64,000 nt of DNA from sequence record NC_025447.1; one strand, given 5' to 3'. The notes below the pieces were generated by a model. That model had not been told where the DNA came from and searched no databases. It saw only the letters and a list, made by a program, of their open reading frames with translations. This document shows positions 10,660 through 42,772 of the stretch, in pieces (the first letter of the stretch is position 1; every line of letters begins with the position of its first letter). The translations under genes were made by a program, and so were the position numbers.

Positions 10660-10995
<336 letters not shown>

Positions 10996-11584: not shown

Positions 11585-11680
<96 letters not shown>

Positions 11681-12185: not shown

Positions 12186-12599
<414 letters not shown>

Positions 12600-12656
12600 C
12601 TAAATAATTCAGTACTGAGGATATTAATATGTTTAAAGATGAACGTCCAGATTTGT

Positions 12657-12694
<38 letters not shown>

Positions 12695-12715
12695 GAATTC
12701 CACAATCAGACGTAT

Positions 12716-13033
12716 ATGGTGTAAGCTACGTCGATGCAATCCAGAACAAGATCTCTGGTACTCTAGGAAGTGGTGAATGTTAACCTAGACGGGTTTGATA
12801 ATTGGACGATAGGCAATTATTACTTGACTAGCAGGTTGAAACTAGAGGTGACAGTCCTTCACCAAACTGGAAAACCGGATGGACTTTTATTTAAAAGGGT
12901 AAGGCGTGGAAATATGTTTACAGAAGTTGCTTTTAGTAGCCTGTACGCCCCACGACAAGGTAGCCGAAAGGTAAGTTAAAACGGGTGGTTATAAAGCTGA
13001 ATTAACAGCGGCGTTTAAAAGCGTCACCATCCA
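12716..13033 (+). ncRNA. candidate structured ncRNA, about 315 nt, with tRNA-like 3' end
   Basis: Own promoter; ATGGTG/CACCAT closing stem; many hairpins; ends in CCA then T7. Confidence 0.6.
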
Positions 13034-13056
13034 TTTTTTTAATTAAAGTTGGCGAT

Positions 13057-13809
<753 letters not shown>

Positions 13810-42352: not shown

Positions 42353-42772
42353 ATGAAAAAGATTTTTTTAAGTATTATTTTAGTACTTTTTAGTTTTAAT
42401 GTATATGCAGCAGATGCTAAACAGGTTGCAAATACAGTAAAAGATGTTATAGTAGATAATGCTCCTACATTAGAGGAAATTGGGGTAAAAACTTGTGATA
42501 TTGTAATATATAATTTAGTTAATGATGAACGAGTTATGTTGAATACGTATGAACAAGTAGTCCCATTGGTTGAATCTGGTGATGCTTTTAGCTTTACATA
42601 TAAAGTTAAATTAACAGGAGGGGTTGAAGTTAATCTTGACATTGATACCGCTTCAGTACTAAAAGATAAACTAGGATATGTGTTCAATCGTATTCGTGAA
42701 GAAGGTCATCTTAAGTATGTTTATGAAAGTAAAATACTAAAACGTGCAATAGTTATAGAAAACTGTAAATGA
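42353..42772 (+). CDS. secreted protein (signal peptide)
   Basis: VYA cleavage site. Confidence 0.75.
   Translation: MKKIFLSIILVLFSFNVYAADAKQVANTVKDVIVDNAPTLEEIGVKTCDIVIYNLVNDERVMLNTYEQVVPLVESGDAFSFTYKVKLTGGVEVNLDIDTASVLKDKLGYVFNRIREEGHLKYVYESKILKRAIVIENCK

Follow-up and report, generated by a model that had tools for sequence, protein, structure and literature searches.

The DNA analysed here is a stretch of 64,000 nucleotides (nt) from sequence record NC_025447.1 (hereafter the window), which belongs to Escherichia phage 121Q (genus Asteriusvirus), a jumbo phage with a genome of 348.5 kb, and the element in question occupies about 12700-13040 of this window, within the tRNA region of the phage (12560-13100 corresponds to KM507819 74560-75100 at 100% identity). 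An earlier reading made from the sequence alone had described positions 12716-13033 as one structured RNA of about 315 nt with a tRNA-like 3' end and a promoter of its own. Comparison with homologous loci reveals that the stretch is a real non-coding RNA locus, made up of several distinct structured-RNA modules strung together (A, B1, B2 and C) and not of a single tRNA-like molecule. No Rfam family matches this mosaic of mobile modules. Our best explanation, to which we assign a joint probability of about 0.55, is that these independently evolving modules form a non-coding transcription unit that runs from a strong sigma-70 promoter to a U-tract, and that module A is freed from the transcript to act in trans; far more of this figure rests on the modular, structured RNA gene than on the trans-acting role.

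A locus of separable RNA modules

When the locus was compared by blastn with 50,697 phage records, full-length homologues were found only in RaK2-like jumbo phages, at 96-99% identity in Asteriusvirus and about 80% in the Alcyoneusvirus phages RaK2 and K64-1. We treated the first half of the stretch as a separate unit, module A, because it occurs alone in other phages, because a 42-nt insert with its own promoter (TTGAAC-17-TATAAT) parts it from module B in RaK2 and K64-1, because it is missing at the same locus in the sister Asteriusvirus JNE01, where the promoter runs directly into the second half, and because several other Asteriusvirus phages retain the promoter alone. The modules are separable on the same grounds, namely the RaK2 promoter between A and B and the presence of B without A in JNE01, and also because the three-way junction of module C stands between two tRNA genes in EJP2.

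This organization bears directly on the sequence-only reading, which proposed one folded unit closed by pairing ATGGTG (12716-12721) with CACCAT (13025-13030), ending in CCA (13031-13033; ...CACCATCCA-3') and matured like a tRNA. All of its elements are present, including the promoter, the two complementary hexamers, the CCA followed by seven Ts, and a hairpin directly before CACCAT (GGCGT/GCGTC, 13010-13025) that is placed against the 3' strand in the manner of a T arm; it is also plausible that the whole stretch between promoter and U-tract is made as one primary transcript. However, a perfect 6-base-pair (bp) match between the first and last 30 nt arose in 10.8% of shuffles, and the two halves, with a promoter between them in RaK2, are found separately in many genomes. 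ATGGTG sits in the loop of a covarying hairpin (P1) that belongs to the module existing alone in other phages, while CACCAT is part of ACCATCC, which pairs locally with GGGTGGT and is kept by compensatory changes, so that the CCA lies inside or abuts a local stem instead of forming a free 3' end. What survives of the tRNA-like end is a rough outline, in which a 5-bp hairpin continues a stem of 7 bp; a T-loop consensus is missing (the last hairpin loop of module C is TTAAAA), as are a discriminator plus CCA and any score as a tRNA with ARAGORN or Rfam. The comparative data already contradict this single-molecule model, and we consider it hardly credible.

The searches against known RNA families gave a consistent picture. 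With Rfam 15 at gathering thresholds the locus had no match, and at E values up to 10 the segment 12560-13100 yielded merely two chance-level matches to unrelated families. Scans of the window and seven homologous loci at both gathering and permissive thresholds returned tRNAs and noise only, with nothing at the positions of the modules. The sequence-only reading had been unable to match the RNA to RNase P, transfer-messenger RNA (tmRNA) or the signal recognition particle RNA, which the Rfam search bore out and extended to tRNA and 6S RNA. ARAGORN found the neighbouring tRNAs but no tRNA within 12696-13040, and no tmRNA anywhere in the window.

Predicted fold and covariation of module A

The single sequence has unremarkable folding energies (z-scores: whole stretch, -1.5; first half, -0.7; second half, -1.8). 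The evidence for structure comes from covariation and not from thermodynamics. We built a covariance model of module A, R1, from 16 sequences; it scores 133-226 bits over 19 copies. In an alignment fitted to this model, so that the pair counts lean towards the proposed structure, 26 of the 45 pairs tested in eight helices across 19 sequences showed compensatory change. Standard pairs filled 90.2% of the cells, compared with 25-40% when the partners were slid by one to three columns, and in 500 shuffles the observed values for percentage paired, count of covarying pairs and covariation score were never reached (for further pair types, 11 of 500 reached the observed value). Compensatory changes were already visible in plain MAFFT alignments.

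The predicted fold comprises seven hairpins and two pseudoknots (Table 1), and the variation among homologues supports both of the latter. In PKa, three classes of four-nt strands occupy the same positions in three lineages (CCAC/GTGG, n = 12; CCTC/GAGG, n = 2; GCAC/GTGC, n = 5), with almost no cross-match between classes. In PK2, whose strands are separated by the A-rich linker TGAAA (12837-12841), all cells pair, and CUAG/CUAG, CUGG/CCAG, CAAG/CUUG and CAGG/CUUG were all seen. Among the unpaired segments that never vary are the P4 loop sequence GACGAUA, two segments in the surroundings of P6 (GAGGU.AC and CCUU) and, towards the 3' end, G.UGG. Among the internal stems listed by the sequence-only reading, CCAGA/TCTGG, CTAGG/CCTAG, TAATTG/CAATTA and GGTGA/TCACC exist and show compensatory changes in homologues; CTGG-AAAA-CCGG is present in the sequence, but it has no such change.

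Three further proposals for module A were discarded. A pairing of GGUUUG in J3/4 with CAAACU failed because its variable positions do not compensate, and pairing of CUAG (12842-12845) with ACUGG (12866-12870) was less consistent than the P5-loop pseudoknot and is broken in the two copies of metagenome contig L025 described below. The idea of a CsrA sponge acting through GGA motifs was dropped, as the GGA triplets are unconserved in Aeromonas phages and in one of these copies (L025b).

Occurrence of module A in phage tRNA arrays

Module A alone (window about 12696-12882), without the second half of the locus, was found by blastn at 86-92% identity in T4-like Bragavirus (Proteus phages PM2 and Pm5461, Morganella phage Mm5 and Shigella phage SdyM_006) and T5-like Novosibvirus (Proteus phages 1, 2 and M4H10_20), with weaker matches in Klebsiella phage KP13-16 (Stephanstirmvirinae) and about twenty Aeromonas phages of the Emmerichvirinae. 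The identity with Bragavirus reaches 92% despite unrelated flanks. The carriers are several unrelated large virulent phages. In most of them module A takes up the space between two tRNA genes; it is on the tRNA strand in every case, and the flanking pair differs from group to group, for example Gly/Asp in Bragavirus, Leu/Ser in Novosibvirus and KP13-16, and Pro/Thr in the Aeromonas phages AP1 and CC2. In Mm5 and Aeromonas phage 65 the immediate upstream neighbour is an annotated small open reading frame (ORF) instead of a tRNA. Scanning metagenome contigs for the pattern of module A added four further loci, all inside tRNA clusters, and no protein neighbour of module A was found to be conserved across the lineages. 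Among close relatives, 121Q and JNE01 for instance, module A is a cassette that some carry and others lack.

Model R1 detected one copy per genome and no second copy in 121Q. The sole locus with two is contig L025 (ERZ808232 NODE-1756), where diverged copies at 2097-2285 and 2412-2605 stand around one tRNA-Arg. A scan of a viral contig collection for further members returned known isolates only, the module A pattern was absent from 185,579 bacterial and archaeal species (one genome each), and R1 had no match in T4, T5, KVP40, phi92, GAP32, PA5oct or XT18.

Two observations concern the annotation and neighbourhood of individual carriers. In Mm5 (L006, PP397179) the GenBank tRNA genes lie on the strand opposite to that given by ARAGORN, and the annotated strand appears to be inverted. 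In Shigella phage vB_SdyM_006 the tRNA-Gly ahead of module A is overlapped at its start by a gene for a segD-like homing endonuclease (L004 1335-1940), which fits endonuclease-driven shuffling of these tRNA regions.

The conservation of module A begins 0-1 nt past the CCA of the upstream tRNA in six contexts and, where no tRNA precedes, just past a promoter; in 121Q the conserved RNA begins at about 12696-12700 and not at 12716, the start given by the sequence-only reading. This placement is among the grounds for the main rival explanation, according to which module A acts in cis, either as a self-cleaving ribozyme or processing signal that makes the 3' end of the upstream tRNA, or in put-type antitermination of RNA polymerase through the untranslated tRNA array. 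Abutment on the CCA in six independent contexts suits such a role, as do the extreme 5' end locked in a covarying pseudoknot, typical of ribozymes that cut at their own 5' end, and the ornate core with its invariant unpaired bases. The position directly after a promoter in the remaining cases suits an element that acts on the polymerase, and the theta ribozymes found beside phage tRNAs offer a published precedent (PMC10879173). However, no Rfam ribozyme family was matched in any lineage at E values up to 10, and the order of strands misfits the nested double pseudoknot of the hepatitis delta virus (HDV) ribozyme, since the 5' strand pairs with a segment within the P3 loop and not with one that follows the P3 hairpin. 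In addition, 121Q, RaK2 and contig L023 have no tRNA directly upstream, module A is absent from close relatives that retain their tRNAs, and, given that tRNA-to-tRNA spacers in these clusters measure 5-9 nt, the abutment may merely reflect compaction. We thus regard a cis-acting role as unlikely, though by no means far-fetched.

Modules B1, B2 and C

The elements of the second half are, by their distribution, separate units, which occur elsewhere without module A. The long irregular hairpin of module B1 is common to podophages of the genus Kuravirus, where it is 83% identical over 54 nt in genomes that are otherwise unrelated. Its inner stems show no variation between RaK2-like phages and Kuravirus, and two pairs of its closing helix show compensatory change. 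The stem GGCGT/ACGCC of the sequence-only reading can indeed be drawn here (GGCG/CGCC being an alternative register of the hairpin), but it competes with the shifted register CGTGG/CCACG, which is favoured by a G-C to A-U change in KP13-7. The possibility that module B is the leader of a conserved downstream gene was rejected, as 121Q gp130 and RaK2 ORF218 are unrelated.

In the Kuravirus vB-EcoP-XT18 (L009 1150-1790) about 650 nt upstream of an endonuclease gene have no annotated gene and are rich in G+C hairpins; they hold a B1-like hairpin together with GGACGAUA and CAGAUGGA, motifs that resemble those of module A. This stretch, which had no significant Rfam match, may be a large structured RNA.

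Module B2, a small tetraloop hairpin with a linker, travels with module C, and the two form a unit between tRNA-Ser and tRNA-Arg in EJP2. Module C is a three-way junction, with compensatory changes at three pairs of its closing stem and three of its last hairpin. The other inner hairpin (GCTG..CAGC) was correctly noticed by the sequence-only reading as a stem, but homologues show no compensatory change in it. RaK2 carries three copies of module C in its tRNA region, and EJP2 and JNE01 carry one each. One RaK2 copy lies just upstream of module A, and the third comes after tRNA-Ser, with a U-rich run, a new promoter and tRNA-Met next in line. Because it is repeated and covarying and has U-rich runs behind it, and in RaK2 a new promoter as well, module C would act as terminator-like punctuation. 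An apparent second copy in the window, at 42599, was set aside as a chance match inside a coding sequence (CDS), with no junction.

The DNA of module C (12996-13030; also L002 1950-2000 and 3598-3650) has in addition a promoter-like reading, with TTGACA or TTAACA separated by 17 nt from a -10-like hexamer. In the first RaK2 copy this arrangement, TTGACA-17-TATTAT, is the only visible promoter for module A, and the element may serve as both a terminator-like RNA structure and a promoter.

Such promoter-like sequences would also suit conservation at the level of DNA, as a recombination or homing-endonuclease target or as a set of promoter and terminator signals, with no RNA function. Homing endonucleases are known to shuffle the tRNA regions of T-even phages (PMC2330249), and the seg-type endonuclease gene of SdyM_006 lies just upstream of the tRNA-Gly preceding module A. 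Yet the substitutions in module A, two pseudoknots included, are strongly biased to pairing within one strand, a bias for which signals in the DNA do not account, the orientation of the module always matches that of the tRNAs, and the module C stem strand 5' of the -10-like box covaries with the box. Conservation of the DNA alone is therefore very improbable in our judgement.

Promoter, putative terminator and transcription evidence

The sigma-70 type promoter in front of the locus (Table 1) places the expected transcription start at about 12700-12702. The same promoter directly drives module B in JNE01, and a related one stands ahead of module A on metagenome contig L023. The tandem duplication that precedes it in 121Q is single-copy in relatives: contigs from the RNA runs X15 and X17 join 12594 straight to 12665, and JNE01 likewise has one copy. 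At the opposite end, module C and the run of seven Ts look like an intrinsic terminator, with a 7-bp stem, then an A, then the T-run, although the output of a simple terminator scan did not include this site. The near-consensus promoter and the U-tract end make a primary transcript of about 340 nt plausible, and the earlier description of a structured RNA directly behind a near-consensus promoter and ending at a U-tract holds for the locus as a whole.

Six public RNA runs contain parts of the stretch, and we compared their contigs with 12300-13500. In run X16, the depth over 12665-12985 is double that of the upstream gene and nothing is covered downstream, a pattern that fits termination at module C and gives it weak support. 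Taken as a whole the RNA-run contigs are not decisive, as they neither show nor exclude a discrete RNA.

Coding potential

The only GenBank annotations near the locus are gp129, which overlies the 5' part of module A, and gp130, which starts at 13057. That the region encodes a small protein, whether the 69-amino-acid (aa) ORF, gp129 or a 21-aa ORF starting from an internal ATG at 12915, might be argued from the presence of these frames in 121Q and from the annotation of one of them. None of them, however, has a Shine-Dalgarno sequence, and across module A no open stretch of at least 30 aa exists in any of the six frames in RaK2, K64-1 or contig L024. The 69-aa ORF is broken in RaK2 by the 42-nt insert and a 2-nt indel, the indels do not keep to multiples of three, and the ATG at 12915 is ATC in Kuravirus. 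No frame of gp129 is conserved, and its substitutions follow the base pairing; the homologous segment, moreover, occupies gaps between tRNA genes. Both gp129 and the 69-aa ORF are thus probably not genes, in agreement with the sequence-only reading, which had taken the locus for non-coding, and a protein product is the least credible of the explanations considered here.

Proposed mechanism

This comparative evidence shows module A to be a conserved, pseudoknotted non-coding RNA gene with the behaviour of an accessory cassette of phage tRNA arrays, best read as a cassette-like stable RNA that is released by tRNA-type processing. In 121Q, one primary transcript from the start predicted above would carry modules A, B and C and would mostly end at the junction and the U7 run, with module C marking off one transcription unit from the next in the way of a terminator. 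The next event would be the liberation of module A in the form of a compact RNA that resists nucleases. Its release in 121Q would proceed by cleavage within the AU-rich linker between A and B, a candidate endonuclease site, whereas between tRNAs an RNase P cut at the next tRNA and 3' maturation of the previous one would set it free. Once freed, module A could act in trans through its invariant loops (GACGAUA, GAGGU.AC, CCUU and G.UGG), most likely by binding a protein, of host or phage origin, that belongs to the tRNA or translation machinery, and its function would be accessory, useful to the phage yet dispensable.

Several points weigh against this picture. The folding energy of the single sequence is unremarkable, and across the 19 sequences P7 and the conserved 3' tail have no covariation support. 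Module C lacks a clean U-tract in EJP2 and hence is not always a terminator. The RNA-run contigs also cover the flanking protein genes, break at repeats and show no discrete transcript, and those of X15, X17 and X19 cross the putative terminator, which could reflect either DNA or read-through transcripts. The discrete, processed RNA is a prediction from sequence, and the trans-acting, protein-binding role is pure inference, with no co-occurring partner protein found. Finally, the -10 box of 121Q lies one base from AATTCCAC, so that a start at 12700-12702 would cut the 5' pseudoknot strand, and the 121Q transcript may lose AAUU from PKa, with no more than the CCAC core left; we counted this proximity of the promoter as a weakness of every model and not of the modular transcription unit alone.

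A more far-reaching version of these ideas is that module A represents a new functional class of phage RNA, passed as a cassette between unrelated virulent phages, being either a new self-cleaving or tRNA-end-forming ribozyme or a compact double-pseudoknot decoy. As a decoy, its invariant GAGGU.AC/UCACC hairpin and CCU loop would mimic the helix formed by the Shine-Dalgarno and anti-Shine-Dalgarno sequences, or another feature of tRNA or the ribosome, and such a molecule, if real, would manipulate host translation or defeat a tRNA-directed defence. We consider this reading speculative and quite unlikely.

Comparison with known systems

By position, the closest counterparts of module A are rnaC and rnaD of phage T4 (species 1 and 2), which are annotated at the end of the T4 tRNA cluster. 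Like module A they are non-coding RNAs encoded in a phage tRNA cluster on the tRNA strand; stability is known for those of T4, and to our knowledge their function is still unexplained. However, rnaC carries a canonical T-arm sequence, whereas module A has none and contains two pseudoknots instead. Model R1 found no match in the whole T4 genome, and blastn of the region returned no T4 record. The comparison with the T4 cluster RNAs made in the sequence-only reading is thus apt for genome position and does not extend to sequence or structure.

GOLLD and ROOL are ornate RNAs of about 600-800 nt, often phage-borne and often encoded beside tRNA genes, whose function is unexplained. They are much larger than the ~188 nt of module A and belong to other host groups, and neither of the two Rfam families matches the locus. 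Cryo-EM structures have been reported for both (10.1101/2024.12.08.627333).

Theta ribozymes are HDV-like structured RNAs that lie directly 3' of tRNA genes in gut phages, with their own 5' end in a pseudoknot (PMC10879173). Module A shares with them the position right after phage tRNAs but not the fold, and is about three times longer. The HDV fold follows the order P1-P2-P3-P1'-P4-P2', while in module A the tail is succeeded by two hairpins, the 5' strand of P3, the tail partner and the 3' strand of P3, and HDV-type Rfam models had no match in the locus.

Module C resembles rho-independent terminators in that a G+C-containing stem is followed one base later by seven Ts, and a RaK2 copy ends a tRNA unit before the next promoter. 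In place of their simple hairpin it has a conserved three-way junction, closed by this stem, with a pair of inner hairpins and a junction sequence that is likewise conserved.

An earlier published description of the locus was not found, the literature offering general precedents only; the motif could be among the 10,006 candidate viral structured RNAs catalogued in PMC10690425.

Feature coordinates and neighbouring genes

Table 1 Features of the 121Q locus, in window coordinates
Feature	Position	Strand	Description
70-nt tandem duplication, first copy	12595-12664	+	Weaker promoter copy TTGACT-18-GATATT at 12596-12625 (promoter scan)
Sigma-70 type promoter	12666-12694	+	TTGACT (12666-12671), 17-nt spacer, TATAAT (12689-12694), extended -10 TG; 11/12 in promoter scan
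gp129	12693-12776	+	GenBank CDS, 27 aa; over 5' part of module A
Module A	12696-12883	+	~188-nt structured RNA, seven hairpins and two pseudoknots; no Rfam match
Module A 5' tail	12696-12703	+	
PKa 5' strand	12697-12703	+	CCAC (12700-12703) with GTGG (12770-12773, P3 loop); ATT (12697-12699) with AAT (12776-12778)
P1	12705-12735	+	12-nt loop (12715-12726) contains ATGGTG
P2	12741-12758	+	
P3	12762-12789	+	
69-aa GTG ORF	12770-12979	+	Judged not a gene
P4	12798-12820	+	Loop GACGATAGG
P5	12822-12836	+	
PK2	12828-12845	+	P5 loop CTAG (12828-12831) with CTAG (12842-12845), just 5' of P6
P6	12847-12863	+	
P7	12867-12878	+	
Module A conserved 3' ATGGA	12879-12883	+	
AU-rich linker A/B	12884-12899	+	CTTTTATTTAAAAGGG; unconserved; replaced in RaK2 and K64-1 by 42-nt promoter-bearing insert
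Module B1	12903-12954	+	Long irregular hairpin; inner stems TACAG/CTGTA and GTTGC/GTAGC; closing helix CGTGG/CCACG
Module B2	12957-12982	+	Small GCC-GAAA-GGT tetraloop hairpin (12963-12972) and linker
Module C, three-way junction	12983-13032	+	Closing stem GGGTGGT (12983-12989) with ACCATCC (13026-13032)
Module C inner hairpins	12996-13009; 13010-13025	+	GCTG-AATTAA-CAGC; GGCGT-TTAAAA-GCGTC
T7 run	13034-13040	+	One base past module C stem; seen in sequence

ARAGORN places tRNA genes in the window at 10682, 11491, 13464, 13563, 13728 and 15896, all on the + strand. For the gene at 13464-13555, ARAGORN and GenBank agree on a tRNA-Ser whose anticodon, ACT, is unusual in having A at position 34. 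GenBank additionally gives a tRNA-Leu(taa) at about 11585-11666, right behind tRNA-Ser(tga), which is absent from the output of ARAGORN and of the Rfam gathering-threshold scan. Between 10478 and 12176, interleaved with tRNA genes, lie five paralogous ORFs of 54-66 aa that start MTHEEW... (10478, 10979, 11690, 11851 and 12012) and look, from their sequences, like a repeated small-protein family of the tRNA island.

Significance

Phage tRNA clusters are now viewed as tools for host takeover and for countering tRNA-cleaving defences, and the non-tRNA RNAs inside them have been unexplained since species 1 and 2 of T4. By analogy, the module A family would belong with the stable RNAs embedded in such clusters, and it provides a well-defined family of them, with strong covariation, two pseudoknots and members in at least five phage lineages. 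These tRNA islands hold several RNA modules, A, B1, B2 and C, that reshuffle, and the natural presence/absence variants within one genus (121Q versus JNE01) make the function of module A directly testable.

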